A stretch of 38,931 bases of DNA from Basidiobolus meristosporus CBS 931.73 (Eukaryota; Fungi; Basidiobolomycota): positions 1 to 38,931 of the forward strand of contig MCFE01000758.1 of assembly GCA_002104905.1 (NCBI GenBank), in the 5' to 3' direction. Positions within the stretch are counted from its first letter, which is position 1. Every line of letters begins with the position of its first letter. Below, one piece after another: positions 1,539 through 33,988 of this stretch. The notes under the pieces were generated by a model. It worked only from the letters and a program-made list of their open reading frames with translations. It ran no database searches and was not told the DNA's origin. Position numbers and translations under genes: made by a program.

Positions 1539-4500
1539 TCAAGGCACATCCAATTCCGGGAAGAGATAATGGTCCAAGTAACCGTAGAAATCACTGGACT
1601 TCGACTGAGTGGAGGGTCGAGAGATTCCCGCCGGGTCCCGTTGTCCTTGGGCGATCCGCTCCCAGTCCAGCCACCGGTGCATCGGGACCGAGGTGTGATC
1701 GAATTCCCCTTCTTTATGACTATGATCTAGACCGGTCTCCGATTCCCCCTCCACCAGTCTGGTCTGGCCCCAGGTGAAGTCGTCGAAGTGCCAATAGGCG
1801 TAGGTGGGCAGGACCAGGTTCCAGATGGGTAGGGTGAGCAGGTAGACGATCATGTACCACAGGTAGACGAACCTCCGGGTGGTGGAGAGGATCAGGAGGG
1901 CGGGCAAACCAAGGACCAAACTGAGCAACACAAGGGGGATGACGGGGACCGATTTCCCCAGGAAAGAGATCCCAAGCAGGTAGAGGGTGAAGAGGATGGC
2001 CGCGGGTAGGACCACAGTCCCGAGCAGCTCCATGAACACGAAGAACTGCATGGAGAAGCAGAAGATCCCGCACAGATCCCGGACCAACACCAATTCCAGC
2101 ATGTTGTGCACGGTGGAGTTGATCCAGCGTCGTCGCTGGGAGAGGAGCACCGCGAAGGTGTCCGGTACCACCGTCTTGCAGATCGCCTGGGGGACGAAGA
2201 GCAGCTTTCGTTTGGGGAAGGTTTTGAGAAGCAGGGTGGTGAGGTACCGGTCCTCCCCGAGCAGCAGGAGGTTCTTCTTGTGGAGGGTGTCGACGATGTT
2301 CTCCGAGTAGTGCTCGATCACATCCGGATTGGCCAGGATAGGCACCCAGTAGTCGTTCGGCCCCTTGCGCGTCTTGATACGGTACATGGAAAAGCATCCG
2401 GGGAGGCAGGTGACCCCGCCGAAGACGGACTCGAAGGACTTGGACAGGTGGTGCGATATATGGTACTCGAAGACTGTTGGAAGGGGGGAGGTCAGTGTCC
2501 ATTCGATCGGATCCATGAAGGAGAAACTTACCTTGCATCATAGTGACCCAGCTATCGTTCTTGTTGGCGATCTTGGTCTCGCCGCAGCAGCCCATCACCA
2601 GGTCCTCCCGGGCCATGCACGCAGCCATGTGAGTGAGGGAATCTTTATGGACCTTCGTGTCGGCGTCCACCTTTGGAATAAGCGAGGTTAGTGGATTGCC
2701 AGCTAGGACCGCGAGAGCAGGGCACTCACCATCATCAATAGCTCGTAACGATCGGGGCTGACCCCGGATACCTTCCACATCATGTTGAACAACTCGAACT
2801 CGAAGGGGCTCATACGCTCGTCGAACATCACCTTCTGAAAGAAACTCATCAGCATGATCTGGCTGTCCCGCTTCCCACGATTCCCCGGCTTACTACTGCC
2901 CACCTCCTCCGGGGCGCCACACTTGACGATCACGATCATGGGGACCTTGGAGATCCCCGCCGACGCTGACTGTTCGTATTGATAATGACCAGCGTAGATT
3001 TTGGCCGTGTTGTGTCGCTTACGACCGTCGGCAATGGCTACGTAGGCGTACGGCTGGACCTGTGAGAAGGGGACGATCTCGTCCCCAAGCATGGAAAGAC
3101 AAATGTCGGGGGTCGACATCTCGTTACCGGCCCCGGTGATCTGGCCGTCCGCGATGACCAGGATCAACTTGTGGGAGATCGGGTAGTGAGTGGTGGCCAA
3201 CGACTCCAACGTCGTGCGCAGCCCCTCTTTACCTTCGGAATAGCAGGTGACCAACAGGATGCAATGAAGCGGGTCGAAATTCACCAGAGGGTATTCCGGC
3301 TCTTCGGGGGGTACGCGTGGGGAGATCGGTAGGCACGGGGAGGAAAACACCGGGTAGGTGGTGGTTCCCACTGGATAGGGCTCGGCCCGGAGGCTGAGAA
3401 GACGGGATTCATGGCTTTCCCTTATGCTCTGAAGCTTCCCAGGCTCAAGGCCATCGCCTGGTAGGTGGCGGGTGATATGCTTTTCGTAATGCCCATGCTT
3501 CCTGCGAAGCTTTCCTTGCTTGCGGAGCCTTCTACCTGGCTCGGCCCCAGGGAGCGGTACCGTATACCTGGACACGCGCGGCATGCTTCCAAAGAAGGAT
3601 TTCTTTCCATCTGCCTCCGCTCTACGACTACAAAGGGGGTCAATGAATGGGCCACTCAACGCAGGCAATCCTCCCTGGCCATACCTTACATGGATGTCGT
3701 TGGTATCCGCCCAGATCTCCAGCTCCCTCTCCCGTCTCCTCCGTTGCTCGAAGCTCTCGTTGGCCACGGCACCCATTCTCCAGCTGACCACCCAGCCGAA
3801 ATAGACGGCCAGAAGAAACCGGATCACCACGAGGGCCACAATGGCCAGCAGGCTCAGGACGAGAAAGATGTTGGCGAGGATGCAGCCGATGGTCTGCGAG
3901 TCCACCACCCCCACCTTGATGGTGTCCACCAGACACCTGGCCAGTCGAGGGTTCCGGTTCAGGAAGAAGGTGATGTCTTTCCCTCCCATCTGCGGATTGG
4001 TCGAGATCAGCTCCAGCATGTCCGGGGGAAGAATGAAGTCCAATGGAGAGATCCAACGAAGCCGATCAAGGTCAAGTACGTTACTGTGCCACAAAAGAAT
4101 CTGTCCATGAGTACAGGCAGCAATACAGGTGAATAGAAGAACAGGTGTGAATCCTCTTTAATATGAAACACATACCCGTCGTACACGACCAGACTGGAGT
4201 TGGTCATCTGGATGTCTGACCAATAGTAGAACACCTCGCCGATGAGGATCTGGCTCAGGCAGTTGATCAGGTAGGGCGTGGCCGTGTGGCATCCTCTTCC
4301 GCTGGGATTGGCCGTGGGATTGACAATGATCGTGCCATTAAAGGCGTTATTTTCGATGGGTATACAAGGAAACATGGAATTGATGGGAGAAGGAGACGGC
4401 GACGGCGACATGAAAAATGAGGATCTGGGTTGGATTACCTCTCGACAGCTACTGTAGTCCTGCTGGAACAGAAAGGACAGGTCTTTACCGTTTAACGAGT

Positions 4501-7554: not shown

Positions 7555-9902
7555 TTAGAATGCAAAGTCAGTACGGAACGCGTTCATGTCCCTGCGGTCA
7601 CAGGCGGCAATCAGATCCGGTCGCTCGATCCAGTCCATCGCCATCCGCAGAGTATCCCAGATATTGTCAGACATCATCGAGTTGATCGTCGAGCCGTCAC
7701 CGCTCTGAAGCGCCAATGCCTGGAGAAGATGCTCCGCAGCCTCCTTATGCTGGCCCAGATTGATGCAGCTCACGGCAAGGTTGTATCTGGCCCGGATGTA
7801 GTTGGGGTTGATTTCCAGGGCGTGGAAGTAGGCATCGATCGCCTTGGACGGGTCATGGGAATTGGCCAGGGTGGCACCCAACTTGTTCCACAGTAGATAG
7901 TCTTCAGGCTTGTACGCGAGCGCAGTCTGGAAGCAATCCACCGCCTTCTCGTATTCCTCGGCAATGTTCAGCAGAACCCCTAGACCGACCTGGACATCAG
8001 GGTCGAACTCCTGCTCAGCATTGGCCCGGACCGCTTCCAGATACATCTCCATCACTGCTGCCTGTCTGTCGTATTGTGAGCTACTACTGGGGTGGCATAG
8101 ATTTGAATACCTGTCATGGTTACGAATCCACGATTCCAGAGCATCGTACGCGTACGACTTGTACCCTTCGTTGGTGTACGAGACAGATAGTCCCATCCAA
8201 GCGTCCAGGATCTTGGGGTCGATGTCGATGGCGCGCTTTAGACTGGCTATCGCCATACCGTCCTGCTCGTTCTCTTGCTGTTTTGTCCCTAGAAGATACC
8301 ACGATTGGCCGTCCTGTGGATCAAGCTGAACTTTGGCTTCCAATACGAGGATAGCATTGTTGAGGTCGCTGTTGAGGTCGATGTTCGCATCCAGCAGGCT
8401 AGGATTCTCAAGGTAGGGATTGTTGGCAGTAAACCGGTATTCCCCGTCAAGAGAGCTGGCTGTGTCTTTGGCTGTGTTCCATTGCTCCTCCATTGCCTCC
8501 CACTCGGAATCCTGGGGCGCAGTTCCCAAGTGGTTTTTGTATTCTTCCGACCAGCTCTCCAGTTGGTCGGCATTTCTAAACGCTTCCTCCATTTCACCAA
8601 ACTCTTGATCCTGAACCTCATCCCAATCGGCCTGTGTGCGTTCGAATTCTTTAGTCCAGTCTTGCTTGGGCAACGGTTGGGAGAACGTTGCGTTTGACGA
8701 CTCTCCGAACTCCTCGGCCCAGCTTCGCTCTAGCTTGGCTGCTTCGCCAATGGACATCCCTGCGTCCGATTGTCTGTTCAAGTAGCTGTCTATCCGGTCT
8801 TCAAACTCCGTGGCCCACGTGCTTCCGCCCTCGGCAGGTACCTTCTGCTCGACAATCTTGTTTCCTTCCACAGTTGCTTCCTGATCACGCAGCTTCCGCA
8901 TCAGGCCCAAGAATGTTGAATTCTGAAACTTGGGATTGGACGCATCGATCGATTCCAACAGGGCGCCTGCAGTTTTGGCCAATGCCTCTTTCGGATCGGA
9001 GATATTCTCTTCTTCTTGGAACTCCTTTGCCCAAGATTCTTGATCCATGAATTCGCTCTCCCAAGCGGCCTCTATAAAACACCAATGGAGTTAGAAAGGT
9101 GCTACGTTTCCAGTAAGCATCCATCCTCTCACCCTGCTTCGCAGTCTCATATGCTTTGTCAAACTCCTGGGTGTCGTGGGGTAAACTGGGGCCTTCATAC
9201 TTTTCGAACTCACTCTCCCAATGATGCTGGTCAGCTACGTATTATCATGAGCGCATGTTAATGAGTTTCTTCAGGAATCGTGCATGTAGAGCCAAACTAC
9301 CTAAAGGCGCTGCATGTTGAAAAGCCTCCTCAAACTCTTTGAAGTCGTGGAAATTTGGCCCTTGTGCTTCAACACCTTTGCCGTGTCTCATGAAGTCGTT
9401 TGCCCAGTCTGAGTTGACTTGTGGCGGTGGTTGCATGTGTATATTATCTAATTCCCGGTTTAAGCCTGTGAAATTGAAGGTCTCCATGGGTTGACCACCC
9501 TCTTGCAGAAACTCCTCAGTAAACTGAAGGCCAAGGTGTTTGGTTATTATTGTAGGCTATCAAGAACAGATCTGGCCAACTCAACTTACATTATGTTCCA
9601 TGGAGTTTGAGACGTTCGGTCGGTTGAATGCCTAAAACGAAAAACAAGAAAGTTAGCCCCTGGGATCAAGCGAGTGTACAGGGATCAACGCTACCTTACG
9701 GCCAGAGGTTTCCCCGTACCCTGCCTCAAATCTATCCTAAGACAAAGGACCAGTGAGTTACGGAGATCTTGTGCATAGCAGTCTACCTGGAGCTTACTTG
9801 TTGCAACGAACGATCTTGACCGAAATTTTTCATCAGGCTAGACAAACCATTTCCTCCGGAGCAATCAGCTCCAGAGTCCACTAAGTTTTGAAACGCCGAC
9901 AT
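7555..9902 (-). CDS. PEX5: Peroxisomal PTS1 receptor, about 676 aa, 6 exons
   Basis: Exons 9902-9798, 9736-9695, 9631-9590, 9523-9301, 9234-9133, 9071-7555 join in frame (2031 nt). N-terminal conserved Cys (GADCSGGN..QDRSLQQ), eight WxxxF/Y motifs, C-terminal TPRs (LWNKLGATLAN, YIRARYNLAVSCINLG). Confidence 0.96.
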
Positions 9903-16561: not shown

Positions 16562-17648
16562 ATGTTCCTTCAAACGGACGCCAAGTTTTACTTTCCGAAG
16601 GCTGTGACTACAGTTGAAGGCGACACACTGAACGTTGAAGAGCTCGCTGCAAAGTACAATTTAATATTGTTAACACTAAAGGTATCTCTCTGCTTTCAAC
16701 CTTCAAGGAAGTTCGTCAGACCAACCACTGAATTCTCGTAGGCACCAGGGTGTCCAATATGCCCCCATTTGTTAATGCTTTTGAACTTCCTCGGCTTAAG
16801 CTTGACAAGCCCTGGCGGGGCTTTAGAAGATCCTTTTGAGCACACCACTCTGCAGGTATCCAAAGAAGATTTGGAGGTATCGTAACCATTTTTCTCAAGC
16901 TCATATTTCAACTGGCAGCTAACCTAACCCTTCTTAGTTCAATCGCATTCTGCTACGCACCGACAGCTATTTCCTAGTCCTATGCCCTGGGGAGGTTTCA
17001 CAGCTTGTGGAACTACGGGAGGCCACGAACTTCGGCGAACACTCCTTTATCGTAGATACTGAACTTTCTCTGTCGCGCAGCATTGGTCTATGCATGACGA
17101 TGACTCATATCTGGCCATCAATACTCCACATACAGCCATACACTCTAAAAATCTCACCCATCAAATTTGGCAGAGAGCCAGGGTTTTATGGACACCATTC
17201 TTTAATGTCATTCTTGAGCGCGACCAGATTTGAGGTCGAGGTTCGGTCACTGCGTACCATCTATCGTGCGGATAGAGTGATGGATAACTTGAAGGAGCTT
17301 ATCGAAAGAACACCGGTGTTTGTCACCAAATCCTTCATCTTGCCTATCGAAATATTGGATCGGACGCTTCAGTACTTGGATTTCGCCACTTTGCAAAATA
17401 TCATGAACGTTTCGAGGCAGTGGCACATGCTTGGCTTGCGCACGTTGAAGAATCAGCTTCGGAGCTCCATTGAGGCGCTCAAAGAGCTGCTGCCCAAGCT
17501 TGACAATGGGGAGATTGCAATGCTAATCCACAATGACCATTGGAAATGCTACTACAGACCGCCCGTGCCGGTCAGCATGCTCAATCAGAGACTATCCAAG
17601 TTAATCATAGGAATCTCCAATGCGCAAACCGCATCCAGCTCAACATGA
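16562..17648 (+). CDS. Thioredoxin-fold redoxin (AhpC/TSA-like, CPIC motif) fused to a C-terminal F-box, 321 aa, 3 exons
   Basis: Exons 16562-16681, 16742-16876, 16938-17648 join in frame (966 nt) via two 60-61 bp GT-AG introns. LILLTLKAPGCPICPHLL spans intron 1; F-box-like LPIEILDRTLQYLDFATLQNIMNVSRQW lies near the C-terminus. Confidence 0.72.
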
Positions 17649-17941: not shown

Positions 17942-20900
17942 TTACCGGGGTTTCAAAGGCTTATAGAGCATACTCCCACTGCTCTCACTCCCCTCTTCAC
18001 TAGGCGAGTGGCTTTGTGAGGCAGACAGGTTGAGGGAGGACAAGTGAGCAAGCTGGCTGGGAGTCTGGTAGCCGATTCTCTCTAGAGATTCGGAAGGGAT
18101 GAGCCCGCTATTTGAGGACCAGTTGCTCAAGGCCTTCTGGGTCTTTCTGCGCTTTTGCTTCTCGAAATCCGACCATTTCTTCATGACAATCTTTGCGGCG
18201 TCGAACTCCCCGTCCGCATCCCCATGACTCTCTTGTTTGCCGGTGCCGGCAACCTTTCTGGTCTGTCCCCAGCTGAAATCATCGAAATGCCAGAAGGAGT
18301 ACACCGGTAACACGAAATTCCATATAAACAAGGCCAATAGGTAGATCAGCATCCAGCCAACATACACCAGTTTTCTAGTGGTCATCAGGATCAACACCGC
18401 CGGAAGCCCTAGGATGATCGCAAGCAGGATCAGGGGGATAATCGGGACTGGGGTGGTGATGAACGAGATCACCACCAGATAGATCGTGAAGCAAATGGCA
18501 GCGGGTAGCACAACGGTCCCAACCAGCTCCATAAACACCACGAACTGCATTGAGAAGCAGAATGTACCACACAGATCACGAATAAGCACCAACTCCAGCA
18601 GGTTGTGCACCGTGGAATTGATCCAGCGTCGTCGCTGCGACAAGAGCACTCTGAACGACTCTGGCACCACTGTTTTGCACACAGCCTGTGGTACGAAAAT
18701 CATCTTGCGCTTAGGGAAGGTGCGCAGCATCATAGTGCTGAGGAAGCGATCCTCGCCCAGAAGGAGAAGGTTCTTCTTGTGCAGAGTGTCGACCACGTTT
18801 TCGGAGTAGTGATCGATGATGTCGGGGCTGGCCAGCACGGGGACCCAAAAGTCATTCGAGCCTTTGGGCGCCTTGATCCGATACATACAGAAGCATCCCG
18901 GCAGGCAGGTCACCCCTCCGAATATGGACTCGAAGGCCTTGTTTAGATGGTGGGAGATGTAGTACTCGAACACCTGGATCATGGTCACCCAGCTGTTGCG
19001 TTTGTTGGCGATCTTCGTCTCCCCACAAAGACCCATGATCTGGGGATCGCGCACCATACAGGACACCATACGGGTGACCGAATCTGGATAAACTTTGGTG
19101 TCCGCGTCCACCATGAGCACGATCTCGAAATGATCTGGACTAATGCCGGTGACGCTCCAAATCGCATTGAACAATTCGTACTCCATCTCGGTCATGCGGT
19201 CATCAAACATGACATGCTGCAGGAAGGACATCAGGATGATCTGGCTGTCTCGCTTGCCTCGGTTTCCGGGCTTGGGGCCGTCCGCTTCCTCAGGAGTGCC
19301 GCACTTGGCGATCACGATCATGGGGACCTTGGTCTGCTTCTCCATCGGCACGGTGGACTCGTCGAATCGGTAGTACCCAGCGTATACCTTGGCCATGTTG
19401 TGTCTCTTGGCGCCGTCGGCGATGGCTATGTATGAATAGGGCTGGACGTGCTCGGGGGAGATGACAAAATCCTTCATCATCGAGACACAGATGTCTGGGG
19501 TGGAAAGTTGGTTTCCGGCCCCCACAATCAGACCGTCAGCGATCACCAGGATCATCTTGTGTGAGACTGGGTAGTCGGTCAAGGCCAGCGAATCTAGCGT
19601 GGTCCGTATGCCCAGCTCGTCCTCGGAGTACGCGGTCACCAGCATGATGGTGTAGGCAAGGGGGAAATTGAACGGTTGGAAGGCGGCGGGCGGTGCCGTT
19701 GGCGGCACATGGATGTTTCCGAGTATGGTGGACGATCCGGTCGAGTTGCGTCTCGAGGTACTCCCGGGCGTGGCCAATGAGCTGACCGAGTCGCTCCCCC
19801 AGCCCCTGTTTTTGGCCCTCATCTCATGTGAGAGGTTGTTGTAAGACCGCTTCGTAGAAAAATCATGCTGTGGCGTGGAGAATCGACTGGTGCTCGGTAA
19901 CAGGAGATTGCTGGATTTGGCCGGGCTGTTTCCGTTTCGGACGTAAGAAGGAATGGCGACGTTGCTCGGACTCTCGCTCCATTTCTCGATGGCCTCGATA
20001 CGCTTCCGTCGCTCTTCGTAGGTCTCCTGACGAAAGCTGCCCAGCCGCCAGCTCAGCACCCAGCCGAAGAATACCGCGAGGAAGAATTTGCTCAGAACCA
20101 CACCGAGAATTACGATCAACGATATATAGAGGATGATGTTTGATATGATGCATCCCATCGACGTAGTGTCCAGTGAGCCCACTTTCAGAATGCCCACCGC
20201 GCAGTCGGCCTCATCTCGATGATAGTTGGCCAGCATAAAGGTCACGTCTGTTCCACGATATGGCGAGTTCTGCGACCCAAGCTGTTCGTAGATCGGTGGC
20301 TTTTGGTAGGCTGTCCTCAGTGAGTTCAGCAGATTCATGTCCAGGACATTGCTTCGTAGAGGTTCAGTTAGATCTCGACCGTTCTCAAATGATACACGTC
20401 ACTACAATTACCCGTTGTAGACCACAAGGTTCCGGTCCTTCCTCTGGATATCCTTCCATTCATAGTAAACGTCGCCCAGCAGCGGTAGACCCCGCAATGG
20501 GTTCGTGTTCAAACCCAGATGGCATCCAACACCGGCGGCATTTTCCGTCGGGTCTGGATAGTGGGTGCTGTTGCGTACGACGCAAGGAAAGAACGTCGCG
20601 GGGACGGCCCCGTTGCTCCCTCCCCACATCCTGTTACACCCCTTGTTCGTGCTCTGGAATAAAAAAGAGATGTCCATCGAACCAGCTATGGCTGTGATGT
20701 CCCCGCCTTGAGGGATCAGGCTATTGGTGGAATGGGAGTAACCGGCAATTTGATACGCTCTTCCATGGACCACAGTATAGTCCGAGCCTATTGTCCCTTG
20801 CCGGACTCTTGGGGCAACCCTCCATCCACACAACACCTGTTGTAATCCAAAGGTAAGAAATCCGACGACCAGACACAGGAAGAAGATGATTGTGCAAAGA

Positions 20901-21907
20901 GCCATCTTCTCCCGCCACGCCTGCCTTTTTTCTGGGGTCTTCATACCTAAATGAGGCTTCGGTTAGGAAATGGCTCGTAAACCCGAGACGCCATTGCTCG
21001 ATAATTACCGCAGCATGAAAGGATGGGGCTCGGCGCGTAGAACGTGATCACCCTGGAGAACACTATCCAACAGCTGGGGCATCGCTTCTTTGCGGTCGGT
21101 TGAGGCGGCTTGTTTGGTTTGTTCTCTCGTGTCTCGGTGCCAGCACGGTTGATTATATTCTCCCGCGCACCCCGGGCGTAGCTTCTGGCCTTGGCTGCTT
21201 CCGTATTTTGATTCAGGTAGCGCCTTTCCGGCCGACGCTCTGGACGAACCAAAGATCTCTTCCGACGTGGTGGTTCGGAACGTCCGCGTGCCTCCACATT
21301 TCTATGATGATCGGACCTGCTGCGAGAGGGGGAGCGAGGATAGGAGTCCGTGGATTCATTGGCCTGTGGGTAGATCTCGTCCGTGGCTATTCGCGCGGAT
21401 TTGGACGAGAAGTTTTAGCTTTGTGCCCAATTTGGACATCATGTACTAATTAAGAGGAGAACTCACCACGATGATTTGATAACCGCTGTAATTCCACTCT
21501 ATCAGTCACATTGGCGGTGAAACGGGGTGGTCTACTGGTGTTACGAAATGCATGGGGGTTGATTGGTCGGTTGCTGTATGCGCTGTGGGAGCGGGGATGT
21601 TCAGTTGGGACTACGGAGCGCCTGTGGGTAGCGGGTGAATCTGGGCAACAACATATGCGAATGAGCCATTTCTGTCGCACCTTCAGAAAAACATTCAATC
21701 AATACCTTGCTTGCTTAGCGCGTCTTGTATGTAGCTAGAGTGGAATTTGGGAGCTGCATCAAAGCCTTGCTCCGTGTAAATATCGTTCGAAGCAGGGAGG
21801 TTGGCACTGTGGTGCTCGGGCTCTGGAGAAGAAGGGGTTGTGTGATTTTGTGAGTGAATCCGCCCAGAAGTTGTCTTGTCCGAGTCGCTCTTCCTGGCAA
21901 TAGGCAT
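17942..21907 (-). CDS. CHS3: Chitin synthase, class IV (Chs3-like), copy B, 1232 aa, 5 exons
   Basis: Exons 21907-21706, 21640-21467, 21386-21009, 20946-20412, 20351-17942 join in frame (3699 nt). [26 protein letters not shown] and QRRRW are intact. Confidence 0.95.
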
Positions 21908-23486: not shown

Positions 23487-24521
23487 ATGGCAGCCAACTC
23501 AGCAACATATAAATCCACCGACTTGGGCCATTATCTATTGTATCAAATGCTTCAAATGAATAGTTCTCATCTTGACAAAATACCCCACAATCCCGGGTCC
23601 CGTTTAAGCTCCTTCCCCTCGAATGACATGTGTTTTACTTCGGCGGATAGCGGTCTGCTGGGCGTTAATTTCTCCATCTCCTCCCAATCCCAAAGCCCCG
23701 AACTCTACCTAAACAACCACAACAACAACAACAACCTACAGCAATCGTTCTCGAGTGACGAGGACCTTAGTCCCATCACACCTGGCTTCATGCCGTCGGG
23801 CTCCTATCAGAGCAGCAGTGACGGCCTGATGCAGAAATCGATGGAGAGACTTTCGGATGTAAATCCATTGGCCGCCACGACAATGACCTTCACCTACACC
23901 AAGCAAATGTACATGAACCCGCAAAGCCGGCCGCCACTCCAATTTTACCCTCAAGTTCAGCCTCAAACATACCCGCTCCCCACGCCGCCCCCCGAGAAGA
24001 GCCTGATGTTGAACCGCGGCAACGAGGGCTGCATCTCGTGGAACAGCCAGGAGGTTGCCAAGCCAGGGTACGCATGCCCCAATCCTCCTCCCATGAACGC
24101 GACCAACGAATTCTTCTACTCCCTTCAGAGCCCAGTAAATAAGTCATTCCCCATAGAAGCACAGCCGTTCAACGTTGGCTACGCCGGTGATCGTTCCAAC
24201 GGGTCGAAGGCCTCCAACGGGCTGCTCTACCCATGCATCTATCCGAACTGCCAAAAGTTCTTCACCTCTCTGAGCAACCTCCGTTTACATAGCCGCATCC
24301 ATTCCGCCGACCGCCCATTCAAGTGCAACATCTGCTCCAAGTTTTTCCTTCGCAACCATGACCTTCGCCGACACGAGAAGATCCACCTTGGATTGAAGCC
24401 GTATCCCTGTTCCAGATGCGGCCGCTGCTTCGGCCGCTCCGATGCCATGAAGAGGCACATGCTGATGAAGCGGTGTGCGGAGTCGAGCCCTCGAGTGAAA
24501 TCGGAAGATACCAAAGAGTGA
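23487..24521 (+). CDS. C2H2 zinc-finger transcription factor, 344 aa
   Basis: Single ORF with a low-complexity Q/N/S/P N-terminus (AAC poly-Asn run) and three C-terminal fingers: CIYPNC..HSRIH, CNIC..RNHDLRRHEKIH, and CSRC..RSDAMKRHMLMKRC (C2HC-type). Confidence 0.9.
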   Translation: MAANSATYKSTDLGHYLLYQMLQMNSSHLDKIPHNPGSRLSSFPSNDMCFTSADSGLLGVNFSISSQSQSPELYLNNHNNNNNLQQSFSSDEDLSPITPGFMPSGSYQSSSDGLMQKSMERLSDVNPLAATTMTFTYTKQMYMNPQSRPPLQFYPQVQPQTYPLPTPPPEKSLMLNRGNEGCISWNSQEVAKPGYACPNPPPMNATNEFFYSLQSPVNKSFPIEAQPFNVGYAGDRSNGSKASNGLLYPCIYPNCQKFFTSLSNLRLHSRIHSADRPFKCNICSKFFLRNHDLRRHEKIHLGLKPYPCSRCGRCFGRSDAMKRHMLMKRCAESSPRVKSEDTKE

Positions 24522-31665: not shown

Positions 31666-32717
31666 ATGAGATTGCTAATGTCAGTTTATACACACGTTCT
31701 TCAAGTATGAGCCATCCAAGTGCTATTGGCCTGATTTAGACCATGGGTTGGTTACCAAGGGGTTGCTACCGCCATGTTTCCAACAGTAGAAGCTATAGCA
31801 AATCCACCTTGAGGTTAGTCAAAAAAACTGGAGCATGCTGAGAGTGATCGCTCCAATGTTTCCCTCACAACAGTGACCTTTGCTGACACGAAAAGAAGGA
31901 TTTTTCTTGATCAAGAGGTGACCGCTGCTCGGGTCGTTCGCCGCCGTGAAGAGGCACCAGAAGATACACGGAATCAGGTGAAATCGGAAGAGATCGAAAA
32001 ATGAACACCCACTTCCAATTCGGAGTACATTCTGTAAGGACAACTCATACTTTTAGAATAATTTGCCATGATTGGCTTCCATAGCTGATTATATTTCAAT
32101 GAACGCAATCATTCTGCACACAGCTACACTTCTGTAGTCACGAATCTTGCCGCTTAGTTGAGGTGGTAGATACACCATGGTTGATGAGGTTCAGAGTTAA
32201 CGATTGTGGGCCGAAATTGCATTGGGTAGGAAAAAGTCGTGTTCAGCCTTTGAAACTTTACAACCAAAGCCACACAAAATCCAGAGGCTCCGTGTTCATT
32301 GTCTTTTACTAAATCGGGAAATCTTGAACATCAGAGTAAACGGTGGTGAGCCATCAAATCAAAGTTACATTGAGCAGCTAGTTGAAACTTTACAACCAAT
32401 AATCCAACGGTATCTGCATGTTAATCGTCCTTGTACCATATCGGGAAATGGGGATCATCGCATTTGATTTCCTGCACATGCTTCAACTTGACTGCATTTC
32501 TAGTCATTCGTCACTAATGTGGTGGAGTCTTTACTTGGAATCACCTAAAGAAAGGTCATCACATCATGTATTGAAGCTTCCCTTAGCAATGAAACACCTT
32601 GGTTTCTTTCTGCAGGAGGGAAGCGCTGCATTTCACGAATCTCGATCGAGCAATGCCGTGAATAACTCAGTCATCTACAGGGAGAGAGCATATCATTGTG
32701 TAAGTGCGTTATTGCAA

Positions 32718-32725
32718 TATATAAA
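32718..32725 (+). promoter_or_regulatory. TATA box of the ODC-like gene
   Basis: TATATAAA about 30 nt upstream of ATG 32756, which has an A-rich context (ACAACATGG). Confidence 0.55.
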
Positions 32726-32755
32726 GCCCTCGGTGTAGAGCACTCTTTACACAAC

Positions 32756-33988
32756 ATGGAGGCTCTCAAGATAAGATCAAGCTCGATAAGTGATGCTCTC
32801 AGAGATGAGCTGGAGGCAAGGACTCAGCTTAACAACGACGACCCGTTCATTATCGCCGATGTGGGAGAGGTGATCGAGAGGTTGACAGAATGGAGGAAGC
32901 GTCTTCCGATGGTTCAGCCCTTCTACTCGCTGAAATGCAACTCAGACCCAGAGATAGTTAAGATTCTGTGCAAAGAGGGAATTGGCTTTGATTGCGCGAG
33001 TAAGGGAGAGATTCAATGTGTTCTTAACCATGGGGTCTCCCCATCCAGGATCATCTTTGCAAACGTAGTAAAGGCCACTACTCACTTGCAGTTTGCCAAG
33101 AAGCAGAAGGTTGCCTTGATGACCTTCGACAACCTTGCGGAACTTCACAAAATCAGCCGCTATTACTCAGATGCGGAAGTGGTCATCCGTATTCTGATTG
33201 AAGGGACCAGATCCAAGTACAGCTTGGGTGGCAAGGCAGGTGCCCCGTTGTCTACTGTGGATACTCTTCTCCAGAAAGCAAAGGATCTCGGTGTGAATGT
33301 GGTAGGCGTAAGCTTCCACGTAGGCTGTATGTGCTTCGATCCCGTCTCCTACGAAAGAGCGTTGATGCAGGCCCGGGAGGTCTTTGATATTGGCAAGACA
33401 TACGGGTACCAATTCAAACTGTTGGATATCGGAGGTGGCTTTCCTGGCGATTTGAAATACGATGGGAGCTTTGCTGACATGGCGGATACAATCAGAATCT
33501 GCCTGAAAAAGCTCTTTCCAAGCAATATCCGAGTTATTGCGGAGCCAGGTAGGTATCTGGTCGCTTCAGCATATGTGCTCGCAACAAGTGTTATAGGACG
33601 GCGTATGAATGCCCCGGAAAGTGTGAGATCCAGCGTCAAATGGATGTATTATCTCAATGAAGGGTTGTACGGCTGCTTCAGTATGATCACTTCCGGCTCG
33701 ATTGTTGTAAGACCAAAGATCTTAAGCCACAATAGAAAATTCTACTACACACGCGACAGCGAGCTCAATGATCAGCTCCAGCACGAACCACGCTTTACCA
33801 GTATCCTATGGGGCCCCACTTGTGATACAGCTGACTGCTTGTTCAATAACATTCTTTTGCCCGAGCTGCAAGTAGACGACTGGATAGTATTTGACAGTAT
33901 GGGTGCCTACACCACAGGGACATCAACCGAATTCAATGGGTTCCCGAAAACCGAAATCCTATATATCAATTCTTCAGCGGATTGCTAG
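32756..33988 (+). CDS. Ornithine-decarboxylase-family (fold III PLP) decarboxylase, intronless, 410 aa, divergent substrate site; orthology to SPE1 not established
   Basis: PFYSLKCN (PLP Lys), GFDCAS, MTFDN, GVSFHVG, LLDIGGGFPG, AEPGRY, WGPTCD and MGAYT..EFNGF. The first ATG is at 32756; the track start at 32696 is a non-ATG extension. Confidence 0.92.
   Translation: MEALKIRSSSISDALRDELEARTQLNNDDPFIIADVGEVIERLTEWRKRLPMVQPFYSLKCNSDPEIVKILCKEGIGFDCASKGEIQCVLNHGVSPSRIIFANVVKATTHLQFAKKQKVALMTFDNLAELHKISRYYSDAEVVIRILIEGTRSKYSLGGKAGAPLSTVDTLLQKAKDLGVNVVGVSFHVGCMCFDPVSYERALMQAREVFDIGKTYGYQFKLLDIGGGFPGDLKYDGSFADMADTIRICLKKLFPSNIRVIAEPGRYLVASAYVLATSVIGRRMNAPESVRSSVKWMYYLNEGLYGCFSMITSGSIVVRPKILSHNRKFYYTRDSELNDQLQHEPRFTSILWGPTCDTADCLFNNILLPELQVDDWIVFDSMGAYTTGTSTEFNGFPKTEILYINSSADC

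Follow-up and report, generated by a model that had tools for sequence, protein, structure and literature searches.

The 38,931-nucleotide stretch analysed here, positions 1 to 38,931 of contig MCFE01000758.1 from the fungus Basidiobolus meristosporus CBS 931.73 (hereafter, the window), carries at 16562–17648 on the + strand a gene whose product almost certainly joins an N-terminal redoxin domain to an F-box, judging from comparative sequence evidence. The gene is intact, consists of three exons and is under selective constraint; its product has a length of approximately 321 amino acids (aa). Overall, the reading that we favour, at a probability of roughly 60%, is that the redoxin–F-box protein ties ubiquitylation by Skp1–Cul1–F-box (SCF) ligases to thiol redox state. 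The fusion had been noticed in a preliminary description of the window; that observation was confirmed, and the peptide strings quoted in it were all found at the positions assigned to them. The gene and its product comprise the following features:

16562–16681, + strand: exon 1, 40 codons, with the start codon, the N-terminal beta-hairpin and the first core strand (LILLTLK) of the redoxin domain
16682–16741, + strand: intron 1, 60 nucleotides (nt), GTATCT...GTAG
16742–16876, + strand: exon 2, 45 codons, with the active-site loop and helix and a fungal-specific insert containing GL...DPF
16751–16762, + strand: CPIC, the CxxC motif of the active site, where the first long helix starts; helix 47–59 follows in the model of P0002, the orthologue from Basidiobolus ranarum
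16877–16937, + strand: intron 2, 61 nt, GTATCG...TTAG, with CTAAC branch-point-like motifs
16938–17648, + strand: exon 3, 236 codons and the stop, with the second half of the redoxin fold, the linker helix, the F-box and the C-terminal tail in one uninterrupted reading frame
17112–17117, + strand: W-P of IWPSILHI, candidate cis-Pro, preceding strand 146–150 in the P0002 model
17169–17192, + strand: GREPGFYG, a subfamily signature (G-R-x-x-G-x-Y-G) whose G, R and Y are invariant or nearly so in the fungal family
17193–17309 (approximate, transferred by alignment), + strand: long linker helix from the redoxin domain to the F-box
17340–17435, + strand: F-box (LPIEILDRTLQYLDFATLQNIMNVSRQWHMLG), a PF00646 match with the typical LPxEIL...L...W pattern
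17436–17645, + strand: C-terminal tail of about 70 aa; the third F-box helix extends into it, and it also holds an LP motif, a stretch that varies or is disordered, W..RP and, at its end, a conserved helix

Gene structure and the F-box

The mechanical list of open reading frames (ORFs) covers only 17007–17648, i.e., part of exon 3. The preliminary description had taken the ORF track to show exon 3 only, which was right in that no other exon is represented there, but exon 3 itself is covered only in part. Its proposal that two introns of 60–61 bp add an N-terminus was borne out by the NCBI annotation of the B. ranarum orthologue, by alignment with its locus, by the ratio of nonsynonymous to synonymous change, and by the tiling of a family profile by the exons. 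If intron 1 were left unspliced, the exon-1 frame would run into a stop at 16739–16741.

The window product was searched exon by exon, and database relatives were used for whole-protein analyses. Besides the window's own ORF, the only close relative of exon 3 in a word-index database search was P0002 (K7432_017363), a partial protein of 237 aa with 85% identity over the part shared with exon 3; its NCBI annotation contains the same three exons. When the two loci were aligned, exons 1, 2 and 3 showed 80, 69 and 75% nucleotide identity to the B. ranarum contig, respectively, with zero gaps, and 130 of the 182 exon mismatches (71%) fell at codon position 3. The corresponding identities were 48 and 52% for introns 1 and 2, and 40% for the DNA upstream of exon 1. 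Intron 1 is longer in B. ranarum by 23 nt (not a multiple of 3), and intron 2 differs in length by 6 nt, with 6 gap columns. Summed over the exons, the proportion of nonsynonymous differences (pN) was 0.093 against a saturated synonymous proportion (pS) of 0.80; therefore, all three exons are under purifying selection as coding sequence.

Against a family hidden Markov model (HMM) from which P0002 had been excluded, exons 1, 2 and 3 matched positions 8–41 (E 7e-6), 43–83 (E 1.4e-7) and 86–321 (E 6e-57), respectively, with E-values taken at Z = 1e6. These matches abut, and the exons thus tile the family profile end to end. Because a single uninterrupted exon encodes both the F-box and the second half of the redoxin fold, the fusion is independent of splicing.

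Exon boundaries in other public models could be followed through phmmer matches. Five models (P0028, P0037, P0047, P0062 and P0083) begin at the equivalent of exon 3, with orthologue residues ~85–175 corresponding to their residues 1–90, and two family models (P0029 and P0068) stop at residue 85. Short 5' exons seem to be often missed in public models of this family, and the intron position between exons 2 and 3 may be ancient and common to these genes.

By sequence, the segment at 17340–17435 is a bona fide F-box. Exon-3 residues 135–164 matched PF00646 with 23.4 bits (cut-off, 20.5), and the same exon-3 segment scored 22.6 bits against PF12937, just below the cut-off of 24.3. The F-box that the preliminary description had placed near the C-terminus is therefore real, but it is not at the extreme end, as approximately 70 residues follow. 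Across the family, F-box-like was matched by 22 of 30 members (best E 6.8e-12) and F-box by 17 of 30. In a search of PDB sequences, the family profile matched the Fbw7 and Skp2 F-boxes (E 1.6e-5 to 4e-5) and, weakly, that of FBXL5 (6vcd). A Myc basic helix-loop-helix-like similarity of exon 3 (E 0.085) was weak and was dismissed as chance.

The arrangement of the parts was examined in a model of P0005, a full-length Calcarisporiella protein of 330 aa with 33% identity to the exon-3 product; the model had a predicted local distance difference test score (pLDDT) of 90 and a predicted TM-score (pTM) of 0.86. This model contains a thioredoxin fold at residues 1–160, a helix at 164–206, F-box helices at 218–263, a disordered stretch at 277–291 and a terminal helix at 308–329. 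Helices 218–227, 230–237 and 241–263 stand at the position of the F-box, with block-mean pLDDT values of ~92–96 after residue 220. The linker helix of about 40 residues corresponds to 171–209 in the P0002 model and to 164–206 here. Exon 3 of the window could be aligned through all the parts of P0005 that it spans, including the tail, for which no Pfam match was found.

Fold and active site of the redoxin domain

No AhpC-TSA or Redoxin match was obtained in Pfam for the window exons or for P0002, even at E up to 10; of the Pfam families named in the preliminary description, F-box was thus above its cut-off, but AhpC-TSA and Redoxin were not matched by the window exons. Likewise, the N-terminal domain had no match in NCBIfam or PDB sequence searches with the exons and P0002, and the family profile matched only F-boxes among PDB sequences. 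Because these direct searches were empty, the fold was established by structure prediction. The nearest structures to the ESM Atlas model of P0002 were AhpC-TSA/Redoxin clusters (TM-score 0.74), and its ESM Atlas sequence features also indicated AhpC-TSA/Redoxin families (0.95). With the family alignment as input, AlphaFold2 gave a P0002 model with a mean pLDDT of 90.6 and a pTM of 0.83, and in a Foldseek search against PDB this model retrieved peroxiredoxins together with Mycobacterium tuberculosis DsbE and DsbF at a probability of 1.00, with DsbE/DsbF at ranks 2 and 5. Pairwise comparison using VIA-align gave Z 15.4 for BcpB (root-mean-square deviation (rmsd) 2.5 Å over 145 residues), ~15 for AhpE, ~14 for PrxQ and 13.4 for ResA.

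Intermediate sequences were consistent with this result. An exhaustive representative phmmer search with P0002 residues 1–175 retrieved 84 proteins, and the short matches (165–200 aa) exceeded the AhpC-TSA and Redoxin gathering scores. Five of 30 long fusion members matched AhpC-TSA (E up to 0.01), and one family member, P0004, scored 26.9 bits against Redoxin, for which the cut-off is 26.6. The N-terminal domain is thus predicted to be a thioredoxin fold of the AhpC-TSA/Redoxin (peroxiredoxin/TlpA) type, with peroxiredoxin-type additions present in the P0002 model. The peroxiredoxin-like thioredoxin fold, CxxC, cis-Pro strand position and helical linker of the preliminary description were all supported by the structure models and the family alignments.

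After the active-site helix, a fungal-specific insert of ~28 aa (window 16790–16876; P0002 residues ~60–88) contains a conserved GL...DPF and is modelled as a beta-hairpin. The aligned bacterial relatives lack it, and it might serve as a contact for a client or for the C-terminal tail.

The active site was read from the P0002 model and alignments, and a CxxC at a helix N-terminus with a candidate cis-Pro loop, a feature of the TlpA/ResA/CcmG type, was present. Most aligned fungal members share the motif (W)CP[VIA]CP, in which the first Cys is at least 90% conserved, as is the Pro of W-P. The alignment that included ten bacterial relatives showed no variation at either Cys, at the Pro of the cis-Pro position, at PG or at GR; the G-R of GREPGFYG is common to the bacterial standalone relatives. 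WCPxC is the motif of CcmG/DsbE-type enzymes. The second Cys has been lost in a few members, including P0007 (CPIG) and P0025 (CKLS). The first Cys is the most conserved and the sole one kept in these two proteins, a pattern in the alignment that fits chemistry centred on a nucleophilic Cys. A third Cys (LCPG) is common in fungal members, is replaced in about a third of them and is Ser in the bacterial relatives.

The peroxiredoxin signature PxxxT/SxxC...R calls for a Pro seven residues before the Cys, a Thr or Ser three residues before it, and a catalytic Arg. In the L-T-L-K-A-P-G-C of the window, the corresponding residues are Leu (−7) and Ala (−3, a position that varies within the family), and alignments place W-P in the loop before the strand where the peroxiredoxin catalytic Arg would be expected. 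Peroxiredoxin membership was thus rejected, on the lack of Pro at −7 and of Thr/Ser at −3 and on W-P in place of Arg. Because CxxC and cis-Pro are present and the peroxiredoxin Thr and Arg are absent, the N-terminal domain is a peroxiredoxin-type scaffold with a thioredoxin/TlpA-type active site.

Fungal family and bacterial relatives

Among the 84 phmmer matches, approximately 30 clusters of 300–450 aa had an N-terminal redoxin domain and the same architecture, aligned in the order redoxin, GRxPGxYG, a long helix with conserved R and E, LPxELL...SRxW and a C-terminal helix. They belonged to at least 26 named species of four fungal phyla. The Chytridiomycota were represented by Spizellomyces, Powellomyces, Gaertneriomyces, Geranomyces, Rhizophlyctis, Borealophlyctis, Synchytrium and Polychytrium, the Blastocladiomycota by Sorochytrium, and the Entomophthoromycotina by Basidiobolus (two paralogues) and Neoconidiobolus. 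The Mucoromycota members, which take in Mucorales, Endogonales and Glomeromycotina, were Choanephora, Pilobolus, Spinellus, Benjaminiella, Halteromyces, Gongronella, Zychaea, Apophysomyces, Umbelopsis, Jimgerdemannia, Calcarisporiella, Funneliformis, Diversispora and Paraglomus. No Dikarya were found among the named family matches, which is suggestive given how heavily Dikarya have been sequenced but is no proof of absence. The search for the domain architecture thus revealed a fusion conserved in early-diverging fungi; it is no one-off, and it already stands in databases, where all members are labelled hypothetical, uncharacterized or 'F-box domain-containing protein'.

In a quick maximum-likelihood tree of the N-terminal domain, 25 fungal rows fell on one side of a branch (SH-like approximate likelihood ratio test (SH-aLRT) support 100). 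Spizellomycetales and Mucorales each clustered, and the two Basidiobolus copies grouped together with weaker support (SH-aLRT 85). One fungal group in a tree that roughly follows taxonomy fits a single old fusion and vertical inheritance, and the family is apparently old, derived from a single fusion in early-diverging fungi. B. ranarum has two copies, P0002 and P0007 (K7432_000667). No second copy was found within the window, where the sole other tblastn match of P0002 had E 0.89. In P0003 (Funneliformis geosporum, CAI2181716.1), the first half of the F-box is missing (no LPxEL) and the rest aligns; the gap is probably an exon missed in annotation.

The closest standalone relatives were bacterial CxxC redoxins with 29–33% identity to the P0002 N-terminal domain, found by a profile search from a 5-sequence alignment in metagenome-assembled genomes of Opitutales, Gemmatimonadota, Fibrobacterota, Latescibacterota, Marinimicrobia and others. 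This bacterial subfamily shares TLKxxWCPVC, (S/C)PG, PF(I/V)xD, cis-Pro and GR....YG with the fungal family, but its members are 165–200 aa long and have an N-terminal leader, no F-box and no fungal insert. No NCBIfam model matched it at cut-off. At bacterial loci L002–L017, these standalone relatives form a distinct subfamily with the motifs TLKATWCPVCQxQL, VLSPGP and W.Q.GR....GD and a near-C-terminal Cys. Gene context was not conserved among L002, L003 and L006 and gave no functional hint, the neighbours being a cation efflux protein, an FG-GAP protein, a sulfatase, a molybdopterin hydroxylase and an ABC ATPase. At L002, the longest mechanical ORF over the match was 263 aa with the domain at residues 124–245, and this length may reflect an upstream start codon.

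The window protein resembles TlpA, ResA and CcmG(DsbE) in its N-terminal hairpin, (W)CxxC at a helix start and cis-Pro loop. These bacterial enzymes are extracytoplasmic and are membrane-anchored or secreted, whereas the window protein has no hydrophobic leader and adds the fungal-specific insert and the F-box. In the alignment, no extracytoplasmic leader was seen in the fungal members, which begin 5–15 residues before the first strand, and the bacterial relatives had 25–45 extra, largely hydrophobic N-terminal residues. BCP/PrxQ and AhpE peroxiredoxins were the best fold matches (Z 14–15.4, rmsd ~2.5 Å, ~145 residues), but the N-terminal domain differs from them in lacking the catalytic Thr and Arg and having CxxC and cis-Pro instead.

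Nothing evident links the redoxin–F-box gene to its neighbours in the window, which are of ordinary fungal kinds. Two of those in the 39-kb window encode chitin synthases of the Chitin_synth_2 type that also have a CHS4-like domain; the neighbours recorded were the following:

2706–4094, − strand: chitin synthase, Chitin_synth_2 type, with a CHS4-like domain
7558–9048, − strand: tetratricopeptide-repeat (TPR) protein
17945–20338 with 20411–20944, − strand: chitin synthase, directly downstream of the redoxin–F-box gene and convergent with it
23487–24518, + strand: C2H2 zinc-finger protein
32696–33985, + strand: ornithine/DAP/arginine decarboxylase-like (ODC-like) gene

Proposed function and alternative explanations

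F-box proteins of known type offered partial parallels. The window protein resembles Skp2, Fbw7 and beta-TrCP in its F-box profile match and in the three helices predicted at the expected place in the P0005 model, but these proteins carry leucine-rich repeats (LRRs) or WD40 repeats C-terminal to the F-box, whereas the window protein has its large domain on the N-terminal side and only ~70 residues after the F-box. A functional domain N-terminal to the F-box is found in KDM2A/B and Dia2. The preliminary description had regarded the reversed domain order as unusual, which did not hold, as FBXL5 has a hemerythrin-like iron/O2 sensor N-terminal to its F-box, together with an oxygen-responsive [2Fe2S] cluster (PMC12022348). 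Given this precedent, the order is not novel in itself. In FBXL5, too, a responsive domain precedes the F-box and makes SCF activity depend on a chemical state (PMC12022348), but the likeness is one of logic only: FBXL5 has a hemerythrin fold, di-iron/Fe-S chemistry and C-terminal LRRs for substrate binding, and the redoxin–F-box family is without LRRs. Neither hemerythrin nor LRR matches were found by Pfam in the window exons or in the family members scanned. What is new here is the type of domain that precedes the F-box, together with the thiol chemistry that it implies; the sensor-before-F-box order was already known from FBXL5. Full-text literature searches returned unrelated co-mentions and no paper describing the fusion of an F-box with a domain of thioredoxin-like, redoxin or peroxiredoxin-like type; the preliminary description likewise knew of no characterised example.

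In the mechanism that we propose, the cytosolic or nuclear protein of ~321 aa consists of the redoxin domain, the ~40-residue helix, the F-box and a short helical tail. The F-box would dock on Skp1, a step that we consider likely, and hence on Cul1–Rbx1. The redoxin domain would act as the client-binding or sensing module, because it is the only sizeable module besides the F-box. Its predicted CxxC is probably redox-active; the nucleophilic first Cys could engage oxidised thiols (disulfides or sulfenic acids) of targets, or, alternatively, the domain's own dithiol/disulfide state could gate binding or stability, and by either route ubiquitylation would depend on thiol redox state. That the protein actually serves as a redox-gated SCF receptor is a possibility to which we give somewhat less than even odds. 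A bolder version, which we consider speculative and rather unlikely, is a covalent-capture receptor, in which the first Cys would attack client disulfides or sulfenic acids and the mixed disulfide would hold the client for ubiquitylation, so that the ligase would read thiol oxidation directly. The second Cys would then be a timer of client release, the one-Cys paralogues (CPIG in B. ranarum K7432_000667 and CKLS in Spinellus) would be constitutive trappers, and the whole would be an ancestral fungal system lost in Dikarya.

Several points weigh against a link between SCF ubiquitylation and thiol redox state. As P0007 and P0025 lack the second Cys, a dithiol/disulfide switch is not universal in the family. 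The splice model draws on comparative sequence evidence. The N-terminal exons match no Pfam family, and their family assignment was made via predicted fold and transitive homology. The modelled proteins were P0002 (85% identical over the shared part) and P0005 (33–37% identical), not the joined protein of the window. Furthermore, some F-box proteins work outside SCF complexes. This last point also suits an explanation that we judge unlikely, in which the F-box places a thiol-disulfide reductase on Skp1/SCF or on a non-SCF Skp1 complex, keeping ligase components or clients reduced without selecting substrates. Bacterial standalone enzymes keep the same catalytic-looking CxxC and cis-Pro, and neither Pfam nor the P0005 model gave evidence of a separate substrate-binding domain, both as expected for such a tethered oxidoreductase; however, the conserved C-terminal tail and the fungal-specific insert suggest additional protein contacts. 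The present data fit the tethered oxidoreductase and the receptor model alike.

The cysteines may instead be structural or bind a metal or cluster, with the thioredoxin fold as a redox-inert binding platform. This arrangement, which would be closer to the Fe-S-dependent FBXL5–IRP2 contact than to thiol exchange, appears quite improbable. The third Cys (LCPG), common in the fungal members and Ser in the bacterial ones, speaks for it, as does the frequent reuse of thioredoxin folds as binding modules, but roughly one in three fungal members has another residue in place of that Cys, and CxxC and cis-Pro are invariant in bacterial relatives that look like enzymes. We regard it as very unlikely that the domain is a true peroxiredoxin-type H2O2 sensor, whose peroxidatic first Cys would relay oxidation as in Orp1–Yap1 or Tpx1–Pap1, here linked to a ligase: BcpB, AhpE and PrxQ are the best structural matches (Z 14–15), but Ala at −3, the lack of Pro at −7 and W-P instead of the catalytic Arg disfavour it. 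An annotation artefact, chimera or decaying gene would be in keeping with the shortness of the N-terminal exons, with their absence from the ORF calls and with a splice model drawn from comparison. However, half of the redoxin domain shares an exon with the F-box, the frame is intact with pN 0.09 against pS 0.80, the exons tile the family profile, and the architecture is conserved in ~30 clusters; an artefact, chimera or pseudogene is therefore hardly credible, and was rejected on the shared exon and the conserved architecture.

An F-box protein is characterised by what it contributes to the SCF ligase, and no description of a catalytic-looking thiol-disulfide oxidoreductase domain in such a protein was found in the literature searched. 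If the CxxC selects or senses clients, the redoxin–F-box protein would provide a direct, enzyme-like link from protein thiol oxidation to ubiquitylation, by a mechanism unlike those of KEAP1-type cysteine sensors and of FBXL5 with its metal-based sensor. The proposal is directly testable in a genetically workable early-diverging fungus, for which Mucor and Spizellomyces come into question; the family was found in Spizellomyces and in Mucorales other than Mucor. With members ranging from chytrids to Mucorales and Glomeromycotina and no Dikarya among the named matches, the conserved family marks a part of ubiquitin and redox biology that lies beyond the reach of yeast and Aspergillus models.

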